Source: Octopus bimaculoides (Eukaryota). From it: DNA of 35,109 bases. The position numbers and the translations under genes are program-made. This document shows, in pieces, positions 4,505-34,841 of the stretch; the stretch's first letter is position 1; the number at the start of each line of letters is the position of its first letter. The notes under the pieces are model-generated. The model was not told the DNA's origin, searched no databases, and saw only the letters and a list, made by a program, of their open reading frames with translations. The stretch is taken from positions 95,052,487 through 95,087,595 of the forward strand of contig NC_068984.1 of assembly GCF_001194135.2 (NCBI RefSeq), read 5' to 3'.

Positions 4505-7500
4505 CCTGATGTGCCACCTGCACAGGAGCCAGTCCAGTGACACTGGTAACAACCTTGCTCGAATGTTTTTTCATGTGCCACCGGCACAAGTGCCAGTAAG
4601 ATGACGCTGGTAACAATCATGCTCAAATGGTGCTATTTACATGCCACTGGTACAGAAGCCAGACAGCTGCTCTAGCAATGATCACACTCGGATGGTGCTG
4701 TTAGCGCTCCACTGGCACAGGTACCAGTCATCGAATTTNNNNNNNNNNGCTGTTAGCGCTCCACTGGCACAGGTACCAGTCATCGAATTTGGTTCAGTTA
4801 CGATTTCAATTTCACTTGCCCCAACAGGTCTTCGCAAGCTGAGTTGCGTGTCCAATGAAGGAGACGACATTGGCATGGGTGCCAGTCGTCGAATTTGGTT
4901 CGATTTTGATTTCACTTACCTCAACAGGTCTTTGCAAGCAGAGTTTAGTGTCCAATTAAGTAAAGGTACGAAAAAGTGGGCTACACCCCTGGCAGAGCCC
5001 ACGGATTATGGTCTCACTTGGCTTGCCGGGGCTTCTCACGCACTGCATATTTCCAAAGGTCTCGGTCACTAGTCATTGCCTTGGTGAGGCTTAATGTTCA
5101 AAGGTTGCGCTTCACCACCTCATCCCAGGTCTTCCTGGGTCTGCCTCTTCCACAGGTTCCCTCAACTGCTAGGGTGTGGCACTTTTTCACACAGCTATCC
5201 TCATCCATTCTCGCCACATGACCATACCAGCGCAATCGTCTTTCTTGCACACCACAACTGATGCTTCTTAGGCCAAACTTTTCTCTGAAGGTACTTACAC
5301 TCTGTCTTGTATGCACACTGACATTACACATCCATCGGAGCATATTGGCTTTGTTTCTTGCGAGCTTACACATGTCCTCAGCAGTCACAGCCCATGTTTC
5401 ACTGCCATGTAGCATGGCTGTTCGTACACATGCGTCATACAGTCTGCCTTTTACTCTCAACGAGAGGCCCTTTGTCACCAGCAGAGGTAAGAGCTCTCTA
5501 AACTTTGCCCAGGCTATTCTTATTCTAGCAGCTACACTTTCAGCGCACCCTCCCCCGCTACTGACTTGGTCACCTAGTTAACGGAAACTATCAACTACTT
5601 CTAGTTTTTCGCCCTGGAATGTGGTAAAAGTTGTTTTCTGCACATTTTCAGTGTTTATTGCTCCTGAACATCTGCCACTTACAAAAACTATCTTCCTAGT
5701 TAGCCTTCCTTTGATATTGCTGCACCTCTTATGTGTCCATAGCTTACACTGAGTAAATCTTATAGAATTTCTACCTACGCCTTTTCTACAGATCGAGCAG
5801 GGNNNNNNNNNNTATGTGTCCATAGCTTACACTGAGTAAATCTTATAGAATTTCTACCTACGCCTTTTCTACAGATCGAGCAGGGCCATCTACCTGAAGG
5901 GGTTTGTGTTTTGTCTACCTTCCTACTTAGCTAGGTTGACTCTAAGGCCCTTTGATTCTAGTCTTTGCTTCCACACCTGAAACTTCTCTTCTAGTCTGAT
6001 AGTGACTCAGCAATTAGGGCAAAGTCATCAGCATAGAGGATCTCCCAGGGACATCCTGTCTTGAATTCCTCTGTTATTGCCTGGAGGACTATGATAAAAA
6101 GGAGGGGGCTGAGGACTGAACCTTGGTGGACCCCTACCTCTACCCGGAATTCTTCACTATACTCATTGCCAACCCTCACCTTACTGACAGCGTCCCTGTA
6201 CATGACTCACACAGCTCTCACTAACCATTCATCTATCCCTAGTTTCCTCATTGACCACCAGGTGAGGGATCGGGGGACCCTGTCAAAGGTTTTCTCCATG
6301 TCGATGAAGGCGAGGTACAGAGGTTTATCTTTGGCTAGGTATTTCTCCTGCAGCTGTCTTACCAGAAATATAGCATCAGTGGTGCTTTTCCCAGGCATGA
6401 ACCCAAACTACATCTCATTTAGACTGACTCTCTGCCTAATTAGTTGGGCTATGACCCTCTCCGTGACTTTCATTACCTGATCCAACAACTTGATGCCTCT
6501 GTAATTATTTGTATCTAAAGCGTCACCTTTACCTTTGTAGCAGTTGACTATGGTGCTACTACACCACTTATTGGGTATGACTCCTTTGTGTATCACCTGG
6601 TTAACTATACGGGTGACTAGGCTATAGCCGACACTTCCAGATATTTTGAGCATCTCTGCAGTGATTCCTGATGGGCCAGGGGCTTTCCCTGTCTTCATAC
6701 TCTTAATTGCTTTATCTACCATGGTACTGTCAATTAGGATAGCTGGTCCCTCTGTTGGGTTGACATTTGGCAGACTCTCTTTCTCCCATTCATTCTCTTT
6801 ATTGAGCAACCTTTCATAGTGGCATCTCCAAACCTCTCTCTTTGCAGCCACGTTTAGTGCAAGTGAACCATCATCCATGTGGACACATTTCTCTCCTACG
6901 ACATCACTATTCTCTCTCACATACTGTCTTGCAACACGAAATACCTCAAGTCTCTGGTCCTCACGGCACAGAACATAGGCAAATTTTTTCTTATCTGCTT
7001 CCCCTCTGGCTAAATAAACCTGTCGCCTAGCTTCCCTTCTGGCAGTCTGATACAATTCCTTGCTACCACCGTTCTTCCAGTCCTTCCTACCACCGTTCTT
7101 CCAGTCCTTCCAAGCCTGTTTCTTTTGTCTAATAGCCCTGTCAACAACATTGTTCCACCACCACGTTATTTTGGGTCGTGAGGGGACTTTGCACCATCCA
7201 CAGATCTGGTCAATGGCCCTCAGCAGATTGTCCCGTAGAAACCTCCAGTTGTCTTCTACATCATGAGAAGCTATATCCCCTTCTATTTTGTCAAAGGCTT
7301 CGAGTAATATGTCTCTAAATCTCAGTACATTCGCAGGATCTTTAAGCTTCCAGACCCTTCTCCTCTATGCTGGTCGNNNNNNNNNNTCTAAATCTCAGTA
7401 CATTCGCAGGATCTTTAAGCTTCCAGACCCTTCTCCTCTATGCTGGTCGTCTTCTGGGCAACCACTTAGCCCTGATCCTGAAGTCACTAACTACTAGCCT

Positions 7501-7880
7501 ATGTTGTGGGGTACATTCTTCATCTGGGAAGGTTTTGGCATTTATAAGCAGCCATCTTTCCCTTTTTCTGGCGAGGATGTAGTCAATTTGGCTAGTGTGT
7601 CTGTCAGAATGGTAGGTGACTCGTTGACTGGCAGGTTTCCTGAAGTTAGTATTGCAAACCATAAGGTCATTTGCATCACAGAACTCCAGCAGCCTGGTTC
7701 CCTCTTTATTGCGGGAACCAAACCCATAGCCTCCATGTATGCTATGGAAGCCCCCTGTGTGTTGTCCAACATATCCATTGAAGTCACCAGCCACAAAGAG
7801 AAGGTCTCTGTCATTCGCCAACAAGGTAGTCTGCAAGAGGGTATCATAAAATCGGTCTTTCTGTCCATAACAAAATTTTC
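4505..7880 (-). mobile_element. RTE-clade LINE: APE endonuclease part + reverse transcriptase + C-terminal domain + repetitive 3' UTR; disrupted, runs into an assembly gap
   Basis: ORF fragments show endonuclease motifs (FVAGDFNGYVG, SQIDYIL, PQHRLVVSDF), RT motifs (KAPGPSG, NYRGIKLL, YLAFIDMEKTFDRV, GVHQGSVLSPLLF, LYADDFALI) and the RTE C-terminus (RLRWYGHVARM, GRGRPRKTWDEVV). Stops and frameshifts split the ORF. Confidence 0.95.
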
Positions 7881-8267
7881 NNNNNNNNNNNNNNNNNNNN
7901 NNNNNNNNNNNNNNNNNNNNNNNNNNNNNNNNNNNNNNNNNNNNNNNNNNNNNNNNNNNNNNNNNNNNNNNNNNNNNNNNNNNNNNNNNNNNNNNNNNNN
8001 NNNNNNNNNNNNNNNNNNNNNNNNNNNNNNNNNNNNNNNNNNNNNNNNNNNNNNNNNNNNNNNNNNNNNNNNNNNNNNNNNNNNNNNNNNNNNNNNNNNN
8101 NNNNNNNNNNNNNNNNNNNNNNNNNNNNNNNNNNNNNNNNNNNNNNNNNNNNNNNNNNNNNNNNNNNNNNNNNNNNNNNNNNNNNNNNNNNNNNNNNNNN
8201 NNNNNNNNNNNNNNNNNNNNNNNNNNNNNNNNNNNNNNNNNNNNNNNNNNNNNNNNNNNNNNNNNNN
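7881..8267. other. Assembly gap (N run)
   Basis: Run of N. Other gaps are at 4739-4748, 5803-5812, 7377-7386 and within 32537-32628. Confidence 0.99.
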
Positions 8268-8899
8268 GTTTGTATGAAAATGTTTCGAAAACTCTTTTTT
8301 TTAGACCTCACTCCCTCATCATCCCACTCCAGACCTATTTTGGCAAATTTTTTTTTCACTTCAAAACTATGGGAAGAGCATTTTCAGTAAAAAAAAATTG
8401 CTAATATTTTCAGAGGGAAAAGTGATTTTAAGGGTGATTTGGCTGTTGTTTGTAGCACATCCAAAGACAACTCTCCTCATTTCTTTATCACTCTCACATG
8501 TACTGATGTTTTCCAATATTTTCCCCCCATAAATACATTTATATGCTATAAAAAAGAAAATTTGAGAAATTATGAAGTTTTTGCAACCCCAATCCCTGCC
8601 CCTGGTTGTTTCTGTTTAGAAATGAAAATATTGGAGAGCTTGAGGAGGTCATTGCTGGTATTTATCAACAGTGATGTAAAAAAAATTACAGAGATACATC
8701 TGCATAGCAAGTGACTTGATCTGAGATCGTGTGCTGAAACAAAAGCAATTGCAGCATGGAAGATGTTTGTAAACCATTCAAGAACACAAATACCATTAGT
8801 TTCACTTCAACATTAAAACTATTTTCGTCGCTTTGAAACCGCAACCTGTTCACTGACAAAACTTCACAAAAGTGATGCAGCATGAGGTTTTGTCAGTGA

Positions 8900-8903
<4 letters not shown>

Positions 8904-8938
<35 letters not shown>

Positions 8939-8990
8939 ACACACACACAGAGACACACACACACACACACACACATACACACACACATCA
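8904..8990. repeat. (CA)n microsatellite
   Basis: Directly visible. Confidence 0.95.
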
Positions 8991-10190: not shown

Positions 10191-11715
10191 TATGAAAAAG
10201 CTTGTTGAGGACTTGTACATAAATTTTTTCAAAGTACATTTGATTTGTACTAGATTAGAGTTGTTTTATCAAATTACTAAATATGTCTTCACATACTTTT
10301 TACGCCTTATATTACACAGTCTTAGCCTTACAAAATTTATTAAAAACACATTTTTTATATGAAAGAGAAATACAATCAAAAATTCAATTTGGTATCTGTG
10401 AAATTGGAAATTTTAACACTTACTTCAATTTATGTTTATTTGAAGCCAGAGATGTAAAAATGTACTGATGTAGTGATGACTGGGTATGATGTTGGGTATT
10501 CTAGTAATAGATCACTCTTTAACTGAGTTTGCTTCAGGCAGTTCATATATAGTACTTGGAAATCCTACTGCACAACTTGAATTATCCTGAAAAGAGTATT
10601 TGAAGAAGCTCTGAAACTGCATTGTGGTGAATAAATACATGTAACTTATTTCTATGGGATCTTAGAATTAATGCTGCTGAATATGCTGTAACTTATTGGT
10701 GGGATTTTGTAGACCTTGTATTATGGCTCTTTGCAAATAAGGGACAGTTGGTGATGAACTGGACATGTTGGTGGCTCTGGAAAAGGTCACTACCCTTTTA
10801 TGTCATTAAAAACCACACATAATTAATCATTCTACCAGTAATTAACCTAGCTGGTTGTAATTCTATAATAATCTAGAAATTAAAACATATAACACTGCAT
10901 GGCTTGATGTTTATTTGTAAATGTTTTCTATGTAAGACATGTTAGGGTTGCAATCATATATTGGAGGAGTACTTTTGATTTATAAGTAAATCCTTTCTCC
11001 CATCTGTAACCACTCGATCACAGAGTGAGAGCAGTTCTTTTCAGTTTGACTGACAGAGTTCAAGATTTGGACTGGGAATTCAACAGAGAAAAGTGGTGGT
11101 AATTACCTAAAAAGGTCATATTCAAAAGGAAGAGGTACTCCAATGGAGGTGAGCAGAGATTTCTGAGAAATAGTTTACCATTTAAATTTGTGCATCTAAT
11201 GAACATGTTCTTAAGTTTTGTCATGTTTTTACGCCTTTGTTTGGGACCATTGGGGTATGCATAAAGAAGTTGTCAACATAAAACTTTATTTTGGCAAAGT
11301 TTTATGTTTGAATGCTTGTAGATGGCTTATCTGTCTCTGTGTTTCTGTTACAGTGCTGTATATTGTTAGTATTGGTGTTGAGTAATCCAAGTTAAATTTT
11401 ACCAAGCAGATTAGTATGGATGTAGAAATTTGAATGCTCAAGAGAACCTACTACTCTATCTTATTATTTTATGCTCCAATTTGTTCTGGGTTCCCCTGCA
11501 CAATCAATGGTGTATGTAAAGTACAGTTTGTTCAGTAGGGAATGTCTATGAGCCGTTTACTATATTGTTATTATTTAATCCCAGGTCAGCTCTGGGATGA
11601 CCTGGGATTGATGAAAGATATTTTAACTGTGATTAAAATCATCAACATTGTAAAAAAATATTTAAAAAAAAGAAAAGTACTGAAATTGAAATCTTACTTT
11701 TTAAGTTATTGATTT

Positions 11716-11735
11716 TACTTCCTGTTATTTTACAG
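11716..11735 (+). promoter_or_regulatory. Candidate 3' splice acceptor opening the large zinc-finger exon
   Basis: Pyrimidine tract ttacttcctgttattttacAG at 11735. An in-frame TAA at 11887-11889 means the ORF cannot extend upstream of 11890 without splicing. Alternative AGs lie at 11813 and 11904. Confidence 0.55.
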
Positions 11736-11904
11736 ATTTTCCTGCAAATGTGACCATTCCTGATGTACTTTACCTGAGTTGGACTTGTTCTGATTGGATG
11801 TTATACTTTACAGAAACATACATGGCACCAATAGTGAGGTGTCCATGTATGTTACTTGCAGCTCAGGATTTTGTTGCAAGCTTAACTAAGCTTCTTCTGA
11901 TAAG

Positions 11905-14900
11905 ATGATGTTCTCCAGTTCCAAAGAGAACCAGCTTCCATTATCTGGTAATAATGGTTCGCTTAATGTCAATCAGATATCTAACAAGGGATGTTACAGC
12001 CTTAGGTCACGTCACAAGTCACAAAATATTTTCAAATGTGAGATCTGTAGCAAAATCTTTGATAGCAATTCTTCTTTGGAACAACACATGTTTTCTGTTC
12101 ATCATTCTACAAATGGAGTGTTTTTATGTGAATTCTGTAGTGCCAATTTTTCACAAAAGAGCAGCCTCATGCAACACAGGTGTATCCATTTAACTAATAC
12201 TACTTCACAAGCCATATTAGACACAGGTTTTCCTCAAAAGACTTATCAATCACTGACAGATAATTCTAATATAAATACTGTAAAGATGTCACAGAATTTT
12301 ACCTGCGAATTCTGTCACAAAACATTTAAAACAAACTCAGCTTTGCTAATTCATAACCGCAGTCACACTGGTGAATCTCCTTATTCCTGTGAGTTTTGTG
12401 GCAAGAACTTTCGACAGACTGCACACTTAGATGTCCATATGAGAATTCATACTGGAGAAACACCATTTAAATGTAATTATTGTAATAAATCTTTTAACCA
12501 GAAGAACAACAGAAACAGGCATGAATTAATCCACTTAAATGGTAACATAGAACAAAATCCTACTATAACTGGAATAAACTTTGACACAAACACAGCCACA
12601 TCCCCAATTCATACTTCCAGTGTTCCTAACACATCTCAGAGTTTCACTGTTTCTGATGTGAAAGAATCTTCTTTGACATCTTCCATTTCAGCAGATCAAA
12701 GCAGATCTAATGATTTGATTGTACAACGGACACCACAAACATCTCATATATGTCACTTGTGCAACAAAACTCTTAACAGCAAATCAGCATTACAAGTGCA
12801 TTATAGAACACATACAGGAGAAAGCCCATATGTCTGCCATATCTGTAACCAAAGGTTCAAACAGAGTGCCCATTTGGATGCCCATTTAAGGGTGCATAGT
12901 AAGGAAACTCCTTTTAAGTGTCAATACTGTGATAAGGGATTCTCACAGAAAGGCAACAAAAATCGCCATGAGCGCACTCACTTTTTAAACAAAGAAGGAG
13001 ATACTGGTAAAACAAATACACTACTGCCATCAACCAGAGAAGTATGTCACACAAACAGTATTATTGGTTGTGAATTTGAAACTTTGCTTGATCATGAGGG
13101 AGTCAGAATTAATATAAACTATAAACAGTTTGTTAATATTGATGCAGACAATGTTTATAGTGATAAAAGTAATCTAGCTATTTGTGAGTTTTGCCAGAGC
13201 CCCATCAAAGATTGTACTTGTGCAGCTACTCACTCTTCTTCATTCCGGCAAAATGCAGAACCATATTCTTTTCAGAAGACTACAGAACAGTTTGTTTTAA
13301 GTGATAACACCAGTAGAGAGACTGTAGAGAATCAAACAGCAGAGGTGACAAATATTCAGAAGTATAACAACTCCAGAAGTAAACTCACAGCTCAAACAAT
13401 ATGTAATGACAATACATGCATGTCAGCTTCAAGTGAACTGTTAAATTCCAATACTTCATCAAGGAACCATTCATCATTTATTTGCAAAATGTGTACAAAA
13501 GAGTTTGTCACTAACATTGAACTACAAAGGCACATGCAGTGTCATAAGGGAGTTACTGTCTGTGAGTTCTGTCATAAAGATTTTAAAAGCAGCTCATCAT
13601 TAGCTGTCCACAGACGGGTTCATACTGGAGAGATGCCTTATAAATGTGACTACTGTAACAAAAGCTTTAAACAAGTACCTCATCTTGATGTCCATATGAG
13701 AACTCATACAGGAGAAATGCCATTTCAGTGCCTCTATTGTGACAAAAAATTCAGTCAGAAATGCAACAGAAACCGGCATATGAATACACATGTGAATGAA
13801 GCTGCTACTGAATCAAAGGATAAGTGTGACAAGAATGAGGTATATTCTGGCAACCAGGTTGAAAAACTTCAGTCTCTAACTGAATGTACAACATGTGGAA
13901 ATGAATTTTCTGAACCTAATAGTTTCATAACACATATATTATCACATGACAATCTACCTGATTTATTAAGTCAAAGCAATAATCATAATAATCACACTCC
14001 TGAAATAAACTGCAATAATTCTGGGACAGTTACTTTTAAAGACAGTCAGTGTAGAGTTTGTAATGAGACATTTACAGATCAGGCTGGCTTAGACCAACAT
14101 ATAGCTTCATCTCATAGAAAGAACTCATTCCCTGTCTCCAAAGATAATTGTGAAACTGAAGCAAATAAAATACAGGAGAGACCTTTGGGCTTAATACCAG
14201 GTGAAATCCCTTACATATCTTCATCAGCTAATAATTCTCTTGTAGTTTTGAATAACAATATGGGTACATTAAGCCATTTAGGAAATGAAAGCTCCAAAAG
14301 TTTCCAACCAGACAATTGCAACATTGAAGTTCAGTCAAGGTCACAATCTGGGGAATTGCTTTATGAAGCTGGTTACATTGAAAATTCTCAAAACAAAGAA
14401 TCCAAAACAAATAATTGGATTGAAGCAGCAAGCTTAAAAACAAGTGAACAGAGTATTTCAGCAAATTTTGTTTCCAATGATATGAGCTATACACCTGTTG
14501 AAAGACTTGGAACTCATGACTGTCAGATCTGTAATTCAAAGTTTACTAATTATACAAGTTTTATGGATCACCAAAGCTGTCATAATAACTGTATAGAGAT
14601 GATGAGAAAATCTCAATCAGCTTCTGATGAATTTATTCATAATAACAGCAACTTCTCTGACAGAGGTGTTTTCAAATGTGAGCTTTGTGGAAAGTTTTTT
14701 CCTGACATTGCGAGCCTCCATTATCATCAACAGGTCAAACATTCACAACCTAGATCTTGTCATCAACTCGAGAATGGTGATTTTGAAGAAAGAGATAACT
14801 CTTTCACATCTAGTCCCAGCAACAAAGGACACTTAATAACAGGAAGCACCAACATAACTTCAAGTAATAAAGAAGATTTGGCAGGTATTAACAATAAACT

Positions 14901-17900
14901 TTTCAGTTGTAAAACATGTAACTTCCATTTTAATTCTCAGCAAGACTTGATTAAACATAAATTGTGTCACACTGTTTCAACTAATCATTCAGTAAAGTGT
15001 AATCAGGACATGACTGCAGCTTTAACTCCATCAAATACATGTGCCGCAGTGGCTGACCAAATGAATAAATCAGATTCTCCTTTGGTTTCCACCAATTCAA
15101 ACATATGTGAATTTTGTAAGAAAGATTTCCGTAACCACTCTGCCTTGGTAATCCATCGAAGAATACACACAGGAGAAATGCCATTCCAATGTGAATACTG
15201 TCATCGTGGTTTTAGGCAAGTTGCTCACCTTGATGTACATCTACGGATACACACCGGGGAGACACCTTATAAATGTGCATTTTGTAATAAGAAGTTCAGT
15301 CAAAACTGCAACCGAATAAGACATCAGAAGATTCACCTGCAACCACAAAATTTAGATGGTAGTTATGAGCAGTCAACTAGCCACCAGGCTGGAGATCATA
15401 TGTACAATTGTGAATTTTGTATTTCAAAGTTCAGCAACTATGAAGAGTTTTTAGATCATCTTAACTGCCACAACACTCCTTGCTTACAAGATGGACAACC
15501 AGAAGAATATAAGAAAAAACGAAAATTGCAGTCAGTTTCACAGAGTTTCTATTCTGAAAATGGAACTCCTGAAGATTGGAACTGTTGTGAGAGAGGTTTG
15601 ACTGGATCTAATAATAAATGTAAACAGTGTAATCCCCATTCAGTTAATGCTGGTGAGTGTAACCTACAGATGGGAAGTAATTGTGACAAGACCCCTTTAA
15701 ATGGTTACATACATAACTGTAGTGTATCAGATTGTGAAAATAATGGTGGTTACTTTGTGAAAAACTGCCAGAATAGTCTGAAGGTTATTGGGAATAATGA
15801 ATGTGAGTTATGTAGTGTACAATTTGTGAACAAAGATGAACTTAATGTACACAAAGTGTCTCATCATATGGACCAGCCTTCAACAATGTTTAGCAATAGA
15901 AATTCTACCCACTGTCAGTCCAGCATGAATTTATTGAAAGATTCTGCTGGTCAAGGCCCATTTGAAAAGAGTTGTGAGTTTTGCCAGAAAACATTCAATA
16001 GTACTTCAGCTCTCATTACACATCGACGTGTACATACAGGAGAGACTCCTTACAAGTGCAGTTTTTGTCAAAAAAGCTTTAAACAAGCAGCACATAGAGA
16101 TGTTCATATGAGAATACATACGGGTGAGACACCATACAAGTGCCAGTATTGTGACAGAAGTTTTTCTCAGAACAACAATAGACTTCGGCATGAAAAAACT
16201 CATCAGTTAGACAACAATACTACTACACAATCCAATGAAAATTCTCCAAGGACTGAGCTTCAGAATGACAGCAATGGGGCAACTAGTTCATCAGCTGAGC
16301 AAAATGGTGCATTATGTTTTACTTGTCCAGTATGTGGAGCACTGTTTGAAAGTGGTTTGGACCTCACTGATCACCAAACAATTTGTTTTGCAGCTAATGA
16401 TAAACTTGCACATAATGATATAGATGTACCAAATTGTTCGGTAAGTCTAGTATTAGAAACAGATTCTTTCCCTAATGATGACTTGCAGCACATACCAAGT
16501 TTATCTTCAGACAATAACTACAATCTTAAAGATGCAGACAAGTCTAGTTACTCAGGTAAAAATGTAAGTCAACCAAGTGAAATATTTTTCAGTTGTCACT
16601 CTTGTGGAATTAAATTCAGAACTGAGTCTGTTTTAAATAAACATCAGAAGTCGTGTAAAGGTTCTTCAAGACTGGTTCCTGTAGCAACAGATGATATTGG
16701 CCTAAATTCTACTGTCATGTCTGAAGATGGATCTTCACACTTTACATTAGAAAATAATGTTGAATCATCAAAAGCTAAGCAACATGATGCAACAGTAGAT
16801 CTGTTTCCATGCAACATTTGTGGTGAAGAATTTACTCTTGCCATACATCTTAATTGTCACATGGCTACACATTCAGAGCAAAAAGAATTTACTGATCATG
16901 TTACTAAGCAAAATAAACCAAGAGCACTTTCAATAATCCTTGAAGAACCTTCTTTGCATATGACTGTTGAAGAATTTGGGAATTGTTCTGAAGATGAAGG
17001 TCTTGCTACTCCTCAACCTGACTGTAGTGGTCATCTGGAGAATGGGGAAGACAGTGACAATGTTGCAGAGATGGAAGACAATGATGAAGAGCAAAAAGAC
17101 AATACAAAACAAACTCACTTTAAGTATAAGAAGAATTCACAAATATTAGATTTTGAAAATTTGATAAAAAAAGAAATTCTTCTTGAAGATTATGAAAATC
17201 CTTTACACCAACTGAAAAAAACTTTTATTACAAAAGACAGTTCTAAAGATACAGAAAATCCTTGTGGTATTGATACTGCTATGGAAACAACATCAACTTG
17301 CTTACCTGATGCAGATCGAACAGAATACTTTTGTCATCAATGTAACATAGAGTTTACTAATGAAGAAAAACTACATCAACACAGGATGTCTGTTCATGAG
17401 GAAGCTAAAGAAAATTATGAAGTTGTGACTAGTGCAGAGCCACTACCTACACTATGTAATCGGGGGGATGGAAACCTACTTCTTGACCAACATATATGTG
17501 AATTTTGTGAGAAAGGATTCAACAGTAGCTCTGCACTGCATGTTCATCGTAGAATTCACACTGGAGAATCTCCCTACAAATGCCACCTCTGCAATCGGAG
17601 ATTTAAACAAAATATTCATCTCAATGTCCATTTGCGAACACATACAGGAGAAACTCCTTATCACTGTCAATTTTGTGACAAAAAATTTACACAAAACAGT
17701 AACCGAATTCGTCATCAACGTATGCATCTAGCTGATATTACCACAGTGGATAGTTCAGCTGTTGTGGATAATATTACTCCATCTGAAAATAATGTGTCAC
17801 TTGAACCAAACTCTGATTCTAGCAACAGAGATTCTTCAGATGACCATGAACTTATGACTAATAGTGAACAGCAATGGAAAGATAAAAAGCCTTTATATTA

Positions 17901-20226
17901 TAACCAACTTTTTGAAAAGGAAAGGAAATCATCTGTTCTTAACAACATTCCTATAGAGTATCATCCACCAAATGAGCCTAAAATAGAAGTCAATAATAAT
18001 AACTTGACTGGTTCCATTTACATGGGAGACTCTCAGCAAACGAGTGTTTTAAAAGAGGAAATAGATGCTGGTGACGATAAGCAGCTATCTATAAATACTA
18101 ACAAACAACCAGCTGATAAGGAAGACTCCCAAAGTGAAGTGAACTTGTCTTTCCCTCAAGACTCTAAGTACTACTTAAGGAATTCACACTTTAGATGTGA
18201 TTTCTGCTCACGACAGTTTCGTAGTAAATCTGCACTTATCATACATCGGCGAGTACACACAGGAGAGAAACCTTACCAATGTACATACTGTTTGAAAAGC
18301 TTCAAGCAAGTTGCTCACTTAGAAACTCATTCTAGAATACACACAGGTGAAACTCCATTCAAGTGTAACTACTGTCGACGATCTTTCAGTCAGAAAAGTA
18401 ATTGTGATCGTCATCATCGTATTCATGTGGCTTGGAAAAAGAGGATGAAAGCTAGAGCTAAAGCTGCTGCAAAAACAGTTCACCTATGTACCATCTGTAA
18501 TGGTCGGTTTGCTAATGCCAGTGCTTTAAGCAAGCATAAATGTTCTAAGGTAATTTCACTTGAAGAAGCAGAAGGCAACACTGATAATGTGCTTTCAAGC
18601 ATACCTTACTCATGCAATATATGTGGTAAAAACTACATTAACAAAGGATATTTTGAAAGACATAAACAGTCACACACTTTAAACACCACCTCAGAGAAAG
18701 ATGCAACATCTGTTACTGAAAAGGCATTTTATTTATGTGAGATTTGCCAGCAAAATTTTACAGATAAAACACAATACACTGAGCATGTATTTCAGCATAT
18801 CTCTGAGACACCATGTGATCAGGAAGCAAGTTCATACACCTCTACTGACGATGTTCCTGTCGACCATATTAGAGAAGTCTGCTATTTATGTGAGCAGTGT
18901 AAAAAAGAATTTTATAATAAAGAAGATTTCTATTCTCACTCTTGCTCCTCTACTTTTGACTCTGGCAATAAGGAAAGATATGAAGAACAAGACTCTAAAA
19001 GTTTTGAGAACTCCTGTAATGATGACGAAATATTTACCACAACTCTACTTGATCAAGACCTTTCACGAGAAACTGAAGTTTCTGGGTTTTCAGAACAGAA
19101 TGGAAATAACAGTGGACTGAGTGTGTGTGAGTTCTGCAACAAGACATTCAAAAGTTTATCATCTTTGCTTATTCATCGACGTGTACACACTGGGGAGACA
19201 CCATTTAAGTGTCCTTATTGTAAACGACAATTTAAACAGATTGCACACCTTGATGTCCATTTAAGAACACACACTGGAGAAACTCCTTTTAAATGCCAGT
19301 TTTGTGACAAATCATTCACACAGAACAGTAACAAGAACAGGCATGAGAAAGTTCACCTGAGCAGTGAAACTGCAGCACAACTTGAACTCAGTAGTAGTCA
19401 AATATTTTCTAAAAATTCTGTTAATTCAGCAGTAACTACGTCTGAAAAACCATGTCAAAGTTACTGCTGTGACATTTGTTTTGCTATGTTTTCTACAGAA
19501 AATGACCTAAATGAACACATCCAAACGCATCAAGATACAAGCTATGATCTTGGGACTACGCTTTTAGATTTGAATCAAAATTCAAATAAAAGGCACCACC
19601 AAGGTGAAAATGATGAATCTAACCAAAACCAGCTCCCACATGGAAAATCTAAGAGACTGAGTGACATAAAGAAAAGATGTATTATGGAAGTCAAAGGACT
19701 TGCCAATGAACAAGAGTTAAAGCCAGAAGTTTTTAATCAAAATAGACTTGACGACCAAAGTATGACATACGACAACTTTGGTGAAAATATTTCTTGCCAC
19801 CAGTGTGAAATGTGTGACAAAATATTCCAAACAAATGATGCTCTTGTAGAACACAAATTCTCTGAGCATATAATATCATCTAGTAACCAAGACATTGATG
19901 ATTGCAGTTCAAAAATAATAGGCAGCCAGAAGTCTGTCTCTGCTAACTTTGACAATGGTTTGCAAAAACATGTATGTGAATACTGTAACAAAGATTGCAA
20001 GAGTTTTTCTTCACTGCTTACACACAGACGAGTACACACGGGGGAAACTCCATATAAATGTAGTTACTGTGAACGTAGCTTCAAACAATCTGCTCACTTA
20101 GATGTTCACATGAGGACTCATACAGGAGAAACACCTTATAAATGTAAGTTCTGTGACAAAGCGTTCTCTCAGAATAGTAACAAGAATCGTCATGAGAGAT
20201 TACACCTCATCCAAACAGCTACTTGA
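11905..20226 (+). CDS. Giant multi-cluster C2H2 zinc-finger protein (2773 aa, about 47 fingers: nine tandem triplets plus about 20 solitary C2H2/C2HC fingers), single coding exon
   Basis: Uninterrupted 8,322-nt ORF. It carries repeated CxxC-x12-Hxxx(x)H motifs with TGE(T/S/M/K)P(Y/F) linkers inside triplets, separated by Ser/Asn/Thr/Glu-rich low-complexity spacers. No KRAB, SCAN, BTB, ZAD or SET domain is recognisable in the 44-aa N-terminus. Consistent with the known coleoid C2H2 ZNF expansion; no orthologue recognised. Confidence 0.97.
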   Translation: MMFSSSKENQLPLSGNNGSLNVNQISNKGCYSLRSRHKSQNIFKCEICSKIFDSNSSLEQHMFSVHHSTNGVFLCEFCSANFSQKSSLMQHRCIHLTNTTSQAILDTGFPQKTYQSLTDNSNINTVKMSQNFTCEFCHKTFKTNSALLIHNRSHTGESPYSCEFCGKNFRQTAHLDVHMRIHTGETPFKCNYCNKSFNQKNNRNRHELIHLNGNIEQNPTITGINFDTNTATSPIHTSSVPNTSQSFTVSDVKESSLTSSISADQSRSNDLIVQRTPQTSHICHLCNKTLNSKSALQVHYRTHTGESPYVCHICNQRFKQSAHLDAHLRVHSKETPFKCQYCDKGFSQKGNKNRHERTHFLNKEGDTGKTNTLLPSTREVCHTNSIIGCEFETLLDHEGVRININYKQFVNIDADNVYSDKSNLAICEFCQSPIKDCTCAATHSSSFRQNAEPYSFQKTTEQFVLSDNTSRETVENQTAEVTNIQKYNNSRSKLTAQTICNDNTCMSASSELLNSNTSSRNHSSFICKMCTKEFVTNIELQRHMQCHKGVTVCEFCHKDFKSSSSLAVHRRVHTGEMPYKCDYCNKSFKQVPHLDVHMRTHTGEMPFQCLYCDKKFSQKCNRNRHMNTHVNEAATESKDKCDKNEVYSGNQVEKLQSLTECTTCGNEFSEPNSFITHILSHDNLPDLLSQSNNHNNHTPEINCNNSGTVTFKDSQCRVCNETFTDQAGLDQHIASSHRKNSFPVSKDNCETEANKIQERPLGLIPGEIPYISSSANNSLVVLNNNMGTLSHLGNESSKSFQPDNCNIEVQSRSQSGELLYEAGYIENSQNKESKTNNWIEAASLKTSEQSISANFVSNDMSYTPVERLGTHDCQICNSKFTNYTSFMDHQSCHNNCIEMMRKSQSASDEFIHNNSNFSDRGVFKCELCGKFFPDIASLHYHQQVKHSQPRSCHQLENGDFEERDNSFTSSPSNKGHLITGSTNITSSNKEDLAGINNKLFSCKTCNFHFNSQQDLIKHKLCHTVSTNHSVKCNQDMTAALTPSNTCAAVADQMNKSDSPLVSTNSNICEFCKKDFRNHSALVIHRRIHTGEMPFQCEYCHRGFRQVAHLDVHLRIHTGETPYKCAFCNKKFSQNCNRIRHQKIHLQPQNLDGSYEQSTSHQAGDHMYNCEFCISKFSNYEEFLDHLNCHNTPCLQDGQPEEYKKKRKLQSVSQSFYSENGTPEDWNCCERGLTGSNNKCKQCNPHSVNAGECNLQMGSNCDKTPLNGYIHNCSVSDCENNGGYFVKNCQNSLKVIGNNECELCSVQFVNKDELNVHKVSHHMDQPSTMFSNRNSTHCQSSMNLLKDSAGQGPFEKSCEFCQKTFNSTSALITHRRVHTGETPYKCSFCQKSFKQAAHRDVHMRIHTGETPYKCQYCDRSFSQNNNRLRHEKTHQLDNNTTTQSNENSPRTELQNDSNGATSSSAEQNGALCFTCPVCGALFESGLDLTDHQTICFAANDKLAHNDIDVPNCSVSLVLETDSFPNDDLQHIPSLSSDNNYNLKDADKSSYSGKNVSQPSEIFFSCHSCGIKFRTESVLNKHQKSCKGSSRLVPVATDDIGLNSTVMSEDGSSHFTLENNVESSKAKQHDATVDLFPCNICGEEFTLAIHLNCHMATHSEQKEFTDHVTKQNKPRALSIILEEPSLHMTVEEFGNCSEDEGLATPQPDCSGHLENGEDSDNVAEMEDNDEEQKDNTKQTHFKYKKNSQILDFENLIKKEILLEDYENPLHQLKKTFITKDSSKDTENPCGIDTAMETTSTCLPDADRTEYFCHQCNIEFTNEEKLHQHRMSVHEEAKENYEVVTSAEPLPTLCNRGDGNLLLDQHICEFCEKGFNSSSALHVHRRIHTGESPYKCHLCNRRFKQNIHLNVHLRTHTGETPYHCQFCDKKFTQNSNRIRHQRMHLADITTVDSSAVVDNITPSENNVSLEPNSDSSNRDSSDDHELMTNSEQQWKDKKPLYYNQLFEKERKSSVLNNIPIEYHPPNEPKIEVNNNNLTGSIYMGDSQQTSVLKEEIDAGDDKQLSINTNKQPADKEDSQSEVNLSFPQDSKYYLRNSHFRCDFCSRQFRSKSALIIHRRVHTGEKPYQCTYCLKSFKQVAHLETHSRIHTGETPFKCNYCRRSFSQKSNCDRHHRIHVAWKKRMKARAKAAAKTVHLCTICNGRFANASALSKHKCSKVISLEEAEGNTDNVLSSIPYSCNICGKNYINKGYFERHKQSHTLNTTSEKDATSVTEKAFYLCEICQQNFTDKTQYTEHVFQHISETPCDQEASSYTSTDDVPVDHIREVCYLCEQCKKEFYNKEDFYSHSCSSTFDSGNKERYEEQDSKSFENSCNDDEIFTTTLLDQDLSRETEVSGFSEQNGNNSGLSVCEFCNKTFKSLSSLLIHRRVHTGETPFKCPYCKRQFKQIAHLDVHLRTHTGETPFKCQFCDKSFTQNSNKNRHEKVHLSSETAAQLELSSSQIFSKNSVNSAVTTSEKPCQSYCCDICFAMFSTENDLNEHIQTHQDTSYDLGTTLLDLNQNSNKRHHQGENDESNQNQLPHGKSKRLSDIKKRCIMEVKGLANEQELKPEVFNQNRLDDQSMTYDNFGENISCHQCEMCDKIFQTNDALVEHKFSEHIISSSNQDIDDCSSKIIGSQKSVSANFDNGLQKHVCEYCNKDCKSFSSLLTHRRVHTGETPYKCSYCERSFKQSAHLDVHMRTHTGETPYKCKFCDKAFSQNSNKNRHERLHLIQTAT

Positions 20227-20541
20227 GTCAAAGTAAAACAATATTGTAACTACTCAGAGACTGAATTGTGAATACTTACCAATGTGTATAATAGCATATA
20301 CTGCAACACTTCAGCTTTTCTGTCATCCTTTAAGATAAGAGTTTATCATTAATTTCATATTCATATGTCAATCCATAAACATTGTAATAAGATGTCCATT
20401 CATCAAACTGCTTCAGTTTTGACTGATGCCTTGTTTCTGAAGTTGGTTGACTTATATGCTGTTATATATAATGTTGCAGTCAACACGTCAACCACTGCCA
20501 GTAGAAAACAGCATTTTCTATTATGACAAATTAGTTTCTTA

Positions 20542-20547
20542 AAATAA
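20542..20547 (+). promoter_or_regulatory. Candidate polyadenylation signal (AATAAA) of the ZNF gene
   Basis: AATAAA about 316 nt after the stop codon. A second AATAAA lies at 20660-20665. Confidence 0.4.
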
Positions 20548-20791
20548 AAGGCTTTATTAAGGAATCATATCAAATTATTTTCTAATTTTATTACAATTCT
20601 ACATCTTCAAATGCAAAATTAATGTAACTTTAAGATGTCAAACAGCATTTTTGTTTATAAATAAATATTTGAAGGTATTTTATATAAATATATATAATAT
20701 ATATGTGAGTGAGTGGGCAAACAATAGAAGGGCACTCAACAAATTTATTGGGAGTTACATGTATGGATCAAAACAGTTTGATTCAAATTTG

Positions 20792-25729: not shown

Positions 25730-26831
25730 AGCCGATATGGAAGGGAATATAGCGACTGCTTTCTATTGTCTGACGTAGATTAGCACAACTGGTCAGTGGC
25801 TGCTGTTAAAAAGGTGGTGGAATGAAAAAGAAGCTAGGGGATTAGTTTAGGAGTTATGTCCCTTGGTTGGTTATGCTTTGAAGTGAGCAAGAGTTATCTT
25901 GAAGTGGGGAAAGTGTGTATTATAAATGTGGTGCTTCTGTGGGGATGGGGTGTGTGGTAAGTAGCAGTGTCACGTGTAATTTTTTCTGTGGGGTGTACCC
26001 CCACTTATTTGTGATTTGGCATATGCGGAACTAATAATTCTTTGCAGAAACCACTGCATATTCGTGGAATCATAAATATCGTCAGCAATTTTTTATGGTT
26101 TTTTTCTGTGGCAATATATATTTTTTCACACTTTCTAAGGCTAAATTATTAATAATAATATACCATATTTGCCATCTTACTGGATGCCCCTTCGCAGTTG
26201 AAACTCCCTATGATTAGAATAGCCGCATATCACATCGCTTGATTGTTTCTCTTATTCCTGCTTTCAGTCAAAGCTTGCTAATTAATATCGCGACATCTGT
26301 CTATATTTCACACATACACACTCTCTCTCGCTGTATTTGTCTCTCAACAAAAGCCTCTCATTGTAGTGGAAATATATATATATACATACATATATATATA
26401 TAAAAATATACAGTGTATCACACCAATATTACTTGGACTAGTGATGACAGATCAAAGATATATATAACATGAGACTGAATGTTAATTTTATACCCGCACT
26501 TTTTAAAAAATTATCGCTACATTTGATCATACTCATTGTTTATTTCAACAGGATAATTTTTAAGGTCGTGAAATTAAGTTACTTGCTGGTCCCATCGCTC
26601 TCTCTTTCTCTTATTATTATAGTATTGATTACTGTATCTAGTGGTAATACAAATTAAATTTTTCAAAATCATGATTATTTTTAATCTCTGCTCAATCTCC
26701 CATTGGTGGTATGCACATATTAGATAAAAGGAAGATTTTGTAGGTTTTTTGGGGAAAAACTGCATCCAGTAGCTATCTTAAGTATTTTGTTGAGTGCTGT
26801 GTTTTTCGCAGCATGTTATTAAAGCCCTAAG

Positions 26832-28590
26832 ATGCTGCCCAAACCCCCTGACATCTTCTAAGGCTTCTGGCAGTGAACCTAAGTGCCAGAAAAAGGTTAT
26901 GACGCTCCATGAGAAGGTACAACTACTGGATATGTTCCGGGAAGGTAAAAGTTATGCTACAATAGGTTGCTATTATGTTATCAATGAAAGCACCATACGC
27001 TACATGAAAAAGAATGAGGTAGCAATCAGGATTACTGTAGCAGTAACTTTCAGTGAAAGGGCCAGAAAGATAATGATAGTGAGAAATAAGCATTTTGTCA
27101 GGATGGAATCTGATTTGGCATTGTGGATCAGTGACTGAAAGAAGGAAAACATCCCCTTGAGTGGTATCATTATTTGCAAGAAAGCACTGAAATTCTACCA
27201 GCAGTTCAACAGAGGAGACTGAGCAGAAGGCACCAAAGAACCACATCCAAGACCATTGACAGCATTGGAGCTTGAAAATTTTCAAGCCAGCAAGTGATGG
27301 TTTGACCGTTTCCAGAAACAGTTTAAAATGAAGTGTGTTTTCCTGCGTAGAGAGACAGCAGCAGCCAACAAAGAGGCCACTGAGAAGTACCTCAAGACCT
27401 TCAGGCAGATAATTGAGGACAAGGGATACAATCCAGAACAGGTTTTCAATATGGACAAGACTGGCTTGTTCTGGAAGATGCCTTCCAGAATGTACACCAT
27501 GAAGGACAAAGGTAGAGCCTTACGATTTAAGGCACAGGACAGAGTGGCGCTAATTATGTGTGGTAATGCTGCTAGCTTTGTGATGAAACCAGGATTTATC
27601 TATAAGTCTGCAACCCCGAGGGCCTTTGAAAATAAGAATAAAAACTAGCTGCCTGTCCACTGGATGCACAGTACCAAGGTCTGGATTACCAAAAGTCTAA
27701 ATTTGAATTTGTTCCACCAGTGCTTCATCCCTCAAGCCAAGGAATACCTCCAAAACATATGCATGGAATTCAACATGATGCTTGTTATGGATAATATTGG
27801 CAGTCACTCTTTGAATTTCAATCACAAGGGAGTCCAAGTTGAGTTCCAGCCTATGGATCAAGGTGTGATCCGTGCCTTCAAGGCACTTTACACTCAGAAC
27901 TCTCCAACACCTTGTGGACAGAATAAATTCGGATGAGAATTTCAAGTTAAAGGAGTACTGGCATAACTTCACAATCGCAATGTGCCTGTCAATCATCCAT
28001 GCTGCTCTTAAAGACATGTAAAAAGAAACCCTCATCACATGCTGGAAGAAGATGTGGCCAGAGTGTGTCCAGGACTACAAGGGATTCTCACCTGAAGATA
28101 TTTTGCACAAGGCTGTTGACAATGTGGTGAAACTGGCAAAGGTACTTGGTGGCAAAGGTTTTGACGACGTCACCCAAGATGAGGTCAACAACCTCATCGA
28201 TGCCCACTTTGAAACTCTGACATATGAAGATTTGTTGGAGTTAACAAAACCTGCCAGTAAAGAGGAGGAAGAAGTGCCAGATCCAGAAAAAGAGGAAGAT
28301 GAGGTGGGCCTGGCAATCGAATGTCTGTCTGACCTTTTAAGGACAGCAAAGGAATTGCAAGGGAAGGCAGAAGCATGGGATCCCTATATGGTTCGGTCTC
28401 TCCAATTTAAAAATGCCACTGATGCTGCCATGCAGACATAAAACTCTCCTCACCGCCATGAAGAAACAACGACAGCAACGTCCCATCACAATGTTCCTCA
28501 AGCTCACCAAGAAAGCCTTGCACGAAGATACAACATCCTCTAAAACACCTGAAGAAGAGGCATCCCCTAAAGAGATATTAAATATCTGAA
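26832..28590 (+). mobile_element. Tigger/pogo-family DNA transposon, transposase pseudogene
   Basis: The N-terminal psq-type HTH (KKVMTLHEKVQLLDM...KSYATIG...INESTIRY) is followed by a CENP-B-type HTH (MESDLALWISD...IPL...KA; FQAS..WFDRF). The DDE_1 motifs are VFNMDKTGLFWK, LVMDNIGSH and QPMDQGVIRAFKALY, with a C-terminal KKQRQQRPITMFL. There are several stops, and about 9 codons (LPPNTTSLI-like) appear deleted before QPMD. The non-coding 5' part may begin near 25985. Confidence 0.93.
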
Positions 28591-32109: not shown

Positions 32110-32690
32110 TCTATATATATATATGTATATATGTTTATGTGTGTATGTTTGTATGCGTATGTGTGGGGATGTATGTATATATATGTATATTTGAATTTGT
32201 CATATATATATGTGTGTGTGTGTGTGTATACATGCATATCTGTATATCTCAGTATAGATATTTGCTTATTTGTTTCTTTATATACGGGAAGAGGTATACA
32301 TCTATATATGTGAAAGTCTTTGTGTAGATATGACGGTGTATATATCTGAATAGATATGTATCTAGGTATATATAAGGGAGTATATATATATAAGTATAGC
32401 TGTATTAGTGTGTGTATATATGTGTGTGTGGATGTGTATGTATATATATACATGTATATGGGTATATATGTATATGTGCATGGGTGTATATATGTATGTG
32501 TGTGTATGTATATGTATATATATATATATATATATNNNNNNNNNNNNNNNNNNNNNNNNNNNNNNNNNNNNNNNNNNNNNNNNNNNNNNNNNNNNNNNNN
32601 NNNNNNNNNNNNNNNNNNNNNNNNNNNNTATGTATATATATATAAATAATAAATGAGTATATGCATATATACGTACATGTATGTACATAC
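32110..32690. repeat. Degenerate (TA)n/(TG)n microsatellite tract with internal N gap
   Basis: Directly visible; it is the source of the spurious Y/I/V/C-rich ORFs. Confidence 0.9.
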
Positions 32691-33969: not shown

Positions 33970-34025
<56 letters not shown>

Positions 34026-34521
34026 CCACACACTCTTTCCCACTAGATAATGATGCCAAAAAATTTTTGAAAAACAACTTTCTTCCAAACAATGCCACCT
34101 GGTTTTGCCATTTTTTAAAAGGTCAAGAATAAACTTGTATTGAAAGAACTGACCAGCTGTAAACACAATTTTCTTCTTTCTTCTTTCCTTCTCTTTCCCA
34201 TTGACACTCCTTTCAGATACACAGGTACACACACACCAACACATAAACACTCACACACACAAAAAACACACACACACACTCTCTCACTTTTCCCTCCATT
34301 CCTCACCCTCTCTTACTATCCTATATATATCTCTCTCCACTCCTACACATTCAATAATACTATAAAAAGAAACATTCTCTCAAGGTGAAATCAAAATTTG
34401 ATGAGCCTACAAGACTAGGTGAAACGCTAATTTATAAAACATGTGACATATGAATAAAAATCTGTAAATATACAACCGTCCAGACATCTGAGTACCTGAT
34501 TATTATTTTTTCTAATATATA
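33026..34521. repeat. Long inverted repeat (arms 33026-33387 and 34139-34521, about 750-bp spacer) with a third partial copy at about 33877-34030
   Basis: The arms are reverse complements at high identity, e.g. cctagtcttgtaggctcatca / tgatgagcctacaagactagg and acagctggtcagttctttcaat / attgaaagaactgaccagctgt. Confidence 0.92.
34394..34433 (+). ncRNA. Minimal type-I hammerhead-like motif (mirror copy at 33115-33155, minus strand)
   Basis: Reads aaat tTGATGA g-ccta-caagac-tagg-t GAAA cgc TA attt. The mirror copy has GAAA gcgc TA, giving the palindrome AGCGCT. C3 is replaced by U in both copies. Confidence 0.55.
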
Positions 34522-34584: not shown

Positions 34585-34637
<53 letters not shown>

Positions 34638-34841
34638 TGCATGATGATGTATATGCATGTGTACATGTATATATATGTGTATATATATGTGTATATGTAT
34701 GTATATGGCTATATGTGTGTGTGTATATATATATATTTTTTGTTTGTTATATTTCTGCTGCTTTTAAATAAAGTATATATATATATATATATATAAGAAT
34801 TTAAGGATTGGAGAAAACGCATGTTATAATTGCATACTTTA

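Follow-up and report, generated by a model that had tools for sequence, protein, structure and literature searches.

An octopus protein carrying nine conserved copies of a three-finger zinc finger module, each predicted to read the same short DNA word

Why should a single protein carry nine dispersed copies of the same three-finger module, all with the same base-contacting residues? This question is raised by a gene on contig NC_068984.1 of Octopus bimaculoides (NCBI RefSeq assembly GCF_001194135.2), located in a stretch of 35,109 nucleotides (positions 95,052,487 to 95,087,595 of the forward strand) that we analyzed as a whole and refer to as the window. The explanation that we favor, and that we judge as a whole to be just on the probable side, is that this is an ancient, single-copy gene, so far seen only in cephalopod-type sequences, and that its product, a giant Krüppel-type C2H2 protein, would be an internally amplified multivalent reader of one short DNA word that acts by avidity.

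The gene is a single uninterrupted open reading frame of 2,773 amino acids on the forward strand (positions 11905-20226, in the coordinates of the window), a complete single-exon coding sequence preceded by an in-frame stop 5 codons 5' of the ATG. Its product is an exact match to a database entry (P0226; EukProt and MetaClust) and is 97% identical to LOC115211127 of Octopus vulgaris/O. sinensis. An initial annotation of this DNA, made by a model that saw the letters and their reading frames, had allowed for the protein belonging to a known, characterized family; RefSeq carries it as "uncharacterized protein LOC115211127." A Pfam scan of the whole protein returned zinc finger families only, with zf-C2H2 (PF00096) at 412.7 bits (cutoff, 25.2) and zf-H2C2_2 (PF13465) at 327.6 bits (cutoff, 40), and detected no KRAB, SCAN, BTB/POZ, or ZAD domain. 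With C-x2-C-x12-H-x3-H fingers over the Pfam gathering thresholds and seven-residue linkers of the TGEKP type, the protein belongs among the Krüppel-type C2H2 proteins. A profile search of the PDB gave generic finger matches only (ZFP568, Aart, PRDM9, and CTCF) and no closer solved relative. By a regular-expression scan, the protein contains 45 C2H2-type fingers, of which 27 form nine triplets and 18 stand alone. A KKKRK patch at residue 1203 is a possible nuclear localization signal.

As listed in Table 1, the triplets (T1 to T9) are runs of three fingers set exactly 28 amino acids apart, each 77 amino acids or 231 nucleotides long. A frame and finger scan recovered exactly the open reading frame and the nine triplets that the initial annotation had described, and the five helix positions that it had called invariant were identical in all nine: Q at −1 and H at +3 of finger 2, and Q at −1, N at +3, and R at +6 of finger 3. 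Position +6 of finger 2 was V in seven triplets and A or T in the other two. Finger 1 was the least conserved at −1 (S in seven triplets, T and N in one each), +3 (A or S), and +6 (I, V, or T). Linkers within the triplets read HTGE(S/M/T/K)P in 17 of 18 cases, the exception being HSKETP. The 17 HTGE motifs were encoded by 13 different 12-mers, and all four codon strings that the initial annotation had quoted for freely differing HTGE codons were present. Moreover, a tenth triplet survives as a relic, which aligns with fingers 2 and 3 of an intact triplet at residue 1842 of P0002, the distant orthologue described below.

Table 1. Features of the zinc finger gene and of the rest of the window (contacts are residues −1/+3/+6 of fingers 1, 2, and 3)
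Feature	Position	Strand	Residues	Contacts	Counterpart in P0002 (aa)	Remarks
T1	12304-12534	+	134-210	TAI / QHV / QNR	180 (79% identity)	
T2	12751-12981	+	283-359	SAV / QHA / QNR	331	finger 2-finger 3 linker degenerated to HSKETP
T3	13561-13791	+	553-629	SSV / QHV / QNR	621 (75% identity)	
T4	15106-15336	+	1068-1144	NAI / QHV / QNR	1260	P0002 copy decayed: zinc ligand lost, R at +6 replaced by Q
T5	15973-16203	+	1357-1433	SAT / QHV / QNR	1548	
T6	17497-17727	+	1865-1941	SAV / QHV / QNR	2121	
T7	18196-18426	+	2098-2174	SAI / QHT / QNR	2377	
T8	19126-19356	+	2408-2484	SSI / QHV / QNR	2693	AlphaFold2 pLDDT 71-82
T9	19975-20205	+	2691-2767	SST / QHV / QNR	2899 (79% identity)	AlphaFold2 pLDDT 68-84
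Tenth triplet, relic	16810-16929	+			1842	one surviving finger CNICGEEFTLAIHLNCHMATH at 16810-16872, decayed sequence after
Lone fingers, class A	13885-13947, 14521-14583, 15409-15471, 19468-19530	+			733, 1051, 1357, 2795	H-x3-H; F[ST]N..[DE][FY].DH; acidic/neutral helix
Lone fingers, class B	12037-12102, 14050-14115, 14677-14742, 15802-15867, 17332-17397, 19804-19869	+			782, 1113, 2080, 2224	H-x4-H
T7-T8 spacer	18427-19125	+				four atypical conserved fingers: C2HC HLCTICNGRFANASALSKHKC; CNICGKNY..; CEICQQNFTDKTQYTEH; EVCYLCEQC..EFY..DFY.H.C
Retrotransposon relics	5098-7836	-				non-LTR (LINE-type)
Open reading frame	7501-8277	+				artefactual
Open reading frame	7844-8359	-				artefactual
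DNA transposon fragments	26794-28441	+				pogo/Tigger-like, decayed
Assembly gaps (N runs)	4739-4748, 5803-5812, 7377-7386, 7881-8267, 32536-32628					
(CA)42	8904-8987					
(CA)25	33983-34033					
(AT)72	34591-34736					
TG/TA-rich array	32409-32535					8- to 22-bp units, adjoining a gap

Mean identity among the nine triplets was 63% at the protein level and 64% at the DNA level. The proportion of synonymous differences (pS) averaged 0.87 and was saturated in 34 of the 36 pairs, residues that were identical between triplets used the same codon in only 49% of cases, and the invariant R at +6 was spelled AGG, CGC, CGG, AGA, or CGT. T8 and T9 were closest to each other, at 78% identity in protein and 73% in DNA. 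For the 12 canonical contact positions, mean pairwise identity was 0.73, compared to 0.39 at the 37 other nonstructural positions; drawing 12 of these other positions at random 100,000 times never gave a value as high as 0.73, and the same contact positions were only 0.15 to 0.21 identical in three ordinary octopod poly-zinc-finger proteins used as controls. Given the synonymous saturation, the mixed codons, and a contact identity above both random draws and controls, the modules are copies of old origin in which the recognition residues have not been free to change. The initial annotation had contrasted the protein with zinc finger arrays that diversify these residues, a contrast that the octopod controls support.

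Purifying selection was evident between species as well. The ratio of nonsynonymous to synonymous substitution rates (dN/dS) relative to O. vulgaris was 0.021 in the triplets, 0.104 in the lone fingers, 0.265 in the spacers, and 0.165 over the whole gene; relative to a third octopod, the corresponding values were 0.021, 0.094, 0.248, and 0.165, and none of the eight triplet substitutions fell at −1, +2, +3, or +6. Furthermore, Q and H of finger 2 and Q, N, and R of finger 3 were invariant in 19 of 19 triplets when the 10 intact triplets of P0002 were added to the nine of the octopus. Orthologous triplets of the octopus protein and P0002 were 71% identical, compared to 61% for nonorthologous ones, which indicates that the amplification is older than the split and that concerted evolution is not needed to account for the likeness. 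The old amplification under purifying selection that the initial annotation had proposed is thus borne out by the saturated synonymous sites, the low dN/dS of the triplets, and the contacts kept in every intact P0002 copy. As judged from the sequences, selection has kept every copy the same at the residues with which fingers 2 and 3 contact bases, and such a pattern clearly bears the mark of selection for valency.

Of 5.8 billion clustered proteins, P0002 alone was a distant relative over the full length. It has 3,021 amino acids, fills a 9,192-bp transcript-like Logan contig (L001; run SRR27666080), and is 31 to 42% identical to the octopus protein and colinear with it end to end. It contains 10 intact triplets and one further, decayed copy. 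One intact triplet, at residue 937, has no octopus counterpart, and that at residue 1842 corresponds to the octopus relic. Since the octopus has lost one triplet and keeps a relic of another, and the P0002 copy of T4 has decayed, the ancestor had at least 11 triplets. The number of modules, which the initial annotation had expected orthologues to conserve, therefore was not conserved. The third octopod is represented by a contig (L003; SRR11869390) that matches positions 10824-20668 colinearly over 9.9 kb with 90% DNA identity. This colinearity extends beyond the coding sequence, for 1 kb on the upstream side and 0.44 kb on the downstream side, at 90% identity; conserved untranslated regions within the exon might account for this, as might a contig of genomic origin. 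Signals of the type AATAAA/ATTAAA are located at positions 20543 and 20660.

To find further members of the family, a profile of the T7-T8 spacer, a region specific to the family, was run with HMMER over 1.84 billion representatives. Only two matches exceeded 200 bits, P0001, which represents Octopus, at 472 bits and P0308 at 409 bits, and the next one, at 194 bits, was an unrelated poly-zinc-finger protein. P0308 is a 982-amino-acid Logan fragment from a third lineage, carries four signature triplets, and is 71% identical to the C terminus of P0002. Altogether, the members found were the window protein, P0001/P0225 of O. vulgaris/O. sinensis, P0228/L003 of the third octopod, P0002, and the fragment P0308, a family marked by a colinear giant protein, iterated signature triplets, and a T7-T8 spacer with four atypical fingers. 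The divergence of P0002 and P0308 would fit decapodiform cephalopods, and the samples that yielded them are probably cephalopod. No paralogue or non-cephalopod-like relative with the signature was present among ~450 retrieved proteins. Likewise, three Octopus proteomes contained no close paralogue, and the next octopod matches covered at most 25% of the protein and were without the signature. A triplet-profile search of the 5.8-billion-protein index, with a candidate filter that favors proteins of query length, returned short generic proteins of three to five fingers only. Six insect, crustacean, and owl proteins with high query coverage (P0045, P0030, P0056, P0063, P0023, and P0003) were rejected as relatives since they have other contact sets. 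Giant mollusc proteins of Babylonia (P0258), Haliotis (P0283), and Gigantopelta (P0312) were without the signature, and an identity with ZNF236 was dismissed, as ZNF236 and ZNF236-like matches covered 18 to 41% of the query at 23 to 28% identity and none had the triplet signature.

The triplets show the canonical hallmarks of DNA reading in their spacing, their TGE(T/K)P linkers, and the Q, N, R, and H at their contact positions. Among engineered modules, QSSNLVR reads GAA and QRAHLER reads GGA (PMC9705829), while QLAHLRA reads AGA and QAGHLAS reads TGA (PMC3607563). Because Q..N..R of finger 3 and Q.AHL.(V/A/T) of finger 2 match such published modules, finger 3 is predicted to read GAA and finger 2 (A/T)GA; the half-sites GAA and xGA that the initial annotation had predicted agree with QSSNLVR, QLAHLRA, and QAGHLAS. 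The likeness resides in Q, N, and R at −1, +3, and +6 of finger 3 and in Q, A, and H at −1, +2, and +3 of finger 2 together with a small residue at +6. On the other hand, the octopus fingers have a natural framework with varying +1, +2, and +5 and no engineered counterpart of finger 1, and their specificity is a predicted one. Finger 1 (S.S[A/S]L.[I/V/T]) presents small residues and probably adds little beyond a weak T-rich preference. As fingers 2 and 3 have the same contacts throughout, all of the triplets should share one core, predicted to be 5'-GAA-(A/T)GA-3'.

The gaps between triplets measured 72 to 438 amino acids, in line with the 70 to 440 of the initial annotation. The spacers held the 18 lone fingers, which fall largely into two recurring classes, A and B, which are conserved in P0002 and have a dN/dS of ~0.1. 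The class A copy at 13885-13947 is the first finger after T3, class B fingers usually lie just upstream of the next triplet, and the order triplet-A-B-triplet recurs in both the octopus protein and P0002. The mean net helix charge was −0.94 for lone fingers versus +2.2 for finger 3; with such neutral or acidic helices, lone fingers are poor candidates for base reading, and protein contacts or regulation would be the more probable role. Since the spacers carry recurring, conserved classes of lone fingers, the repeat unit is larger than the triplet. The T7-T8 spacer, with its four atypical fingers, was 39% identical to that of P0002. One spacer of P0002 contains a single AT-hook, RKRGRPKGS (QRRKRGRPKGSRS; residues ~2008 to 2022 of the L001 product), which aligns to residue ~1735 of the window protein and precedes the seventh intact triplet of P0002, the T6 orthologue; the octopus proteins contain no AT-hook or GRP motif.

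When the two halves of the protein (residues 164 to 1386 and 1387 to 2720) were compared, they aligned colinearly over 1,425 columns with 26% identity (E = 2.5e-90), although other registers align significantly as well. The pairings were T1 with T5, T2 with the relic, T3 with T6, the site of a lost triplet with T7, T4 with T8, class A with class A (residues 1169 and 2522), class B with class B (residues 1300 and 2634), and T5 with T9. These data suggest a hierarchical history, in which a five-finger unit was amplified and a block of about five such units was then duplicated. The ancestral unit would have been a triplet with TGE(T/K)P linkers and, after it, a pair of lone fingers whose helices are nonbasic, and repeated internal amplification would have brought it to at least 11 units in the ancestor, leaving nine intact triplets and a relic in the octopus. 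Spacers that the initial annotation had called unalignable are indeed long and varied, but they hold lone fingers, and the halves containing them do align. Polar or disorder-promoting residues make up 69% of the spacers. In an AlphaFold2 model of the region from T8 to T9, built on an alignment of three sequences and with a mean predicted local distance difference test score (pLDDT) of 51, the triplets scored 68 to 84, the class A finger at residue 2522 ~70, and the remaining spacer 21 to 37, which lends weak support to the flexible spacers of the initial annotation.

A core of about six well-specified bases per triplet would be too common for unique targeting. Because so short a core would not confer specificity alone, several modules are expected to engage at once. 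On mostly disordered tethers of 70 to 440 amino acids, several triplets of one molecule could hold several copies of the word simultaneously; clustered or iterated sites would then be favored, and one molecule may join separate DNA segments. Several points weigh against this picture. The recognition code is approximate for natural fingers, and +6 of finger 2 (V/A/T) and all of finger 1 are poorly predictive. The predicted word GAAWGAWT showed no enrichment in the window, with 10 sites versus 10.9 expected, but 35 kb is far too small a region to inform. Both lineages show loss or decay of triplets, which means that some copies are dispensable. In addition, the age of the family is estimated from divergence alone, and the low pLDDT of the spacers is weak evidence for disorder given the shallow alignment.

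Beyond the reading of one word by avidity lies the more specific idea of a cephalopod-specific multivalent chromatin organizer, which would use its 9 to 11 equivalent triplets for coating or bundling a simple repeat of the GAA(A/T)GA type or a transposon-borne array, or for bridging dispersed copies of it. That the triplets share one motif in a multivalent organizer or satellite binder is a reasonable hypothesis, but the sequence alone fits a scaffold, or a transcription factor driven by avidity, as well as it does an architectural or satellite role, and the organizer itself seems to us rather unlikely. No likelier is a scaffold or hub in which a few triplets anchor to DNA or RNA as redundant anchors and the lone fingers and spacers bind proteins, as has been proposed for the large dispersed-finger proteins WIZ/ZNF644 and ZNF462. 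Such a role would suit lone fingers that are kept in the orthologue under constraint and whose neutral or acidic helices make them unlikely base readers, spacers that are themselves under selection (dN/dS of ~0.25 rather than ~1), and triplets that can be lost singly. A few anchors would not, however, explain invariant contacts in 19 triplets of two lineages at a triplet dN/dS of 0.02, and a scaffold overlaps with the multivalent reader rather than excluding it. It is less probable still that the triplets serve a ligand other than double-stranded DNA, be it RNA, DNA-RNA hybrids, or a protein surface engaged by Q/H and Q/N/R. Some C2H2 proteins bind RNA, such as TFIIIA and ZNF346/JAZ, and the protein has a weak similarity to the double-stranded RNA-binding finger family zf-C2H2_jaz when summed over its length; yet no single stretch exceeds the Pfam threshold, fingers of the JAZ type differ in their helix and are joined by long linkers, and the triplets have standard seven-residue linkers, TGE(T/K)P, as well as a Q/N/R/H set that matches validated DNA-reading modules.

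We consider it very improbable that the gene simply belongs to the C2H2 expansions specific to the cephalopod lineage, encoding, for example, a repressor that targets transposons, with an incidental likeness among its modules. Octopus genomes do carry very large C2H2 expansions (PMC12513265, in which a LOC115211127-like gene is not mentioned), and the gene is placed among transposon relics. Nonetheless, it has no close paralogue in the three Octopus proteomes, no other zinc finger gene lies within the 35-kb window, and it has colinear one-to-one orthologues with a low whole-gene dN/dS. Its contacts are conserved rather than diversified as in the octopod controls, and the accessory KRAB, SCAN, BTB, and ZAD domains are absent from the Pfam scan. 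Finally, the triplets might resemble each other through recent duplication or gene conversion (concerted evolution) rather than function, as the close T8/T9 pair could suggest; this view is effectively refuted by the saturation of synonymous sites in all but two pairs, by codons that differ even at invariant residues, five of them at R in +6, and by most triplets being closer to their positional orthologues in P0002 than to their paralogues.

Among known systems, the nearest principle is that of PRDII-BF1/HIVEP1, in which two widely separated finger pairs recognize the same sequence (Fan and Maniatis 1990, as cited in PMC3048431); the ZAS domain is a C2H2 finger pair followed by acidic and Ser/Thr-rich regions (PMC3048431). 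The octopus protein resembles these ZAS (Schnurri/HIVEP) proteins in its very large size and in distant C2H2 modules for the same DNA sequence, here a predicted one. By this analogy, it would extend the principle from two modules to 9 to 11 without homology. ZAS proteins differ in having two modules of two fingers for the kappaB-like GGGGNNNNCC, compared to 9 to 11 triplets with other contacts, and no HIVEP protein or sequence relationship to the ZAS family appeared among any search matches. A caecilian (Geotrypetes) "zinc finger protein 646-like" (P0316) likewise contains finger pairs that share their contacts (HGSN, NMAN) and are dispersed at about ten places, and a lungfish (Protopterus) protein (P0311; LOC122809357) repeats triplets of the DNGR/DSTR type about ten times. 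The two halves of each are only 24 to 47% identical (~28 to 30% in P0316). These proteins differ from the octopus family in contacts, module sizes, and taxa, and such analogues scored 123 to 176 bits compared to 409 to 472 bits for true relatives, in keeping with generic finger similarity. P0313 (Oratosquilla LOC143037053) and P0310 (an ENA contig) are unrelated giants with dispersed LSDT or HGNQ single fingers; all four of these proteins repeat one dispersed module 10 to 20 times with the same contact residues. Since P0316 and P0311 show the same pattern, old homotypic amplification of dispersed finger modules recurs in animals, and homotypic multimodule zinc finger proteins may be a general, unstudied class.

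Many short DNA-reading elements or dispersed fingers in a largely disordered chain are also a feature of the multi-AT-hook satellite binders Drosophila D1 and vertebrate HMGA1 and of the architectural C2H2 proteins CTCF, Su(Hw), and WIZ, which bundle repeats or bridge sites. The resemblance to the octopus protein is one of concept only, that is, many short readers per polypeptide: an AT-hook is no zinc finger, the fingers of CTCF and Su(Hw) differ from each other and form one contiguous array, and no homology was detected.

The rest of the window contains mobile element remains and simple repeats (Table 1). Upstream of the gene are relics of a non-long-terminal-repeat retrotransposon of the long interspersed nuclear element (LINE) type, with broken frames and short N runs; one open reading frame has a weak match to the "endonuclease-reverse transcriptase" Exo_endo_phos_2 (E = 3e-4), and those beside it contain reverse-transcriptase-like text (e.g., RLRWYGHVARMDE) with no Pfam match. 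The two reading frames marked as artefactual in Table 1 are so judged because both read through a 387-base gap. The pogo/Tigger-like fragments downstream gave weak matches to CENP-B_N (E = 4e-4) and DDE_1 (E = 1e-3) in separate short reading frames. None of the simple repeats in the window resembles the predicted GAA(A/T)GA word, and Rfam and tRNA scans of the window were empty.

Most poly-zinc-finger proteins combine differing fingers to read one long site; here, 9 to 11 separate readers have been kept alike, with their contact residues retained across a deep cephalopod split while the intervening sequence changed almost beyond recognition. Comparison of these sequences reveals, in a lineage-restricted gene, selection for valency in an unusually clean form, even though analogous architectures exist elsewhere. 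It also offers a tractable case for how homotypic multivalency shapes genome targeting, with the explicit prediction of one motif, GAA(A/T)GA. If the triplets do not bind DNA alike, their invariant contact residues would still need another explanation. If the protein is an organizer of chromatin, it would do with zinc fingers what satellite bundlers do with multiple AT-hooks, in a lineage whose genome is known to have been reorganized on a large scale, and the acidic lone fingers after the triplets might be built-in regulators or partner-docking sites. If iterated sites are indeed bound, animals with an unusual genome architecture would have in this protein a repeat-binding or bridging factor of a new type, and attention would be drawn to similar unstudied proteins of vertebrates.

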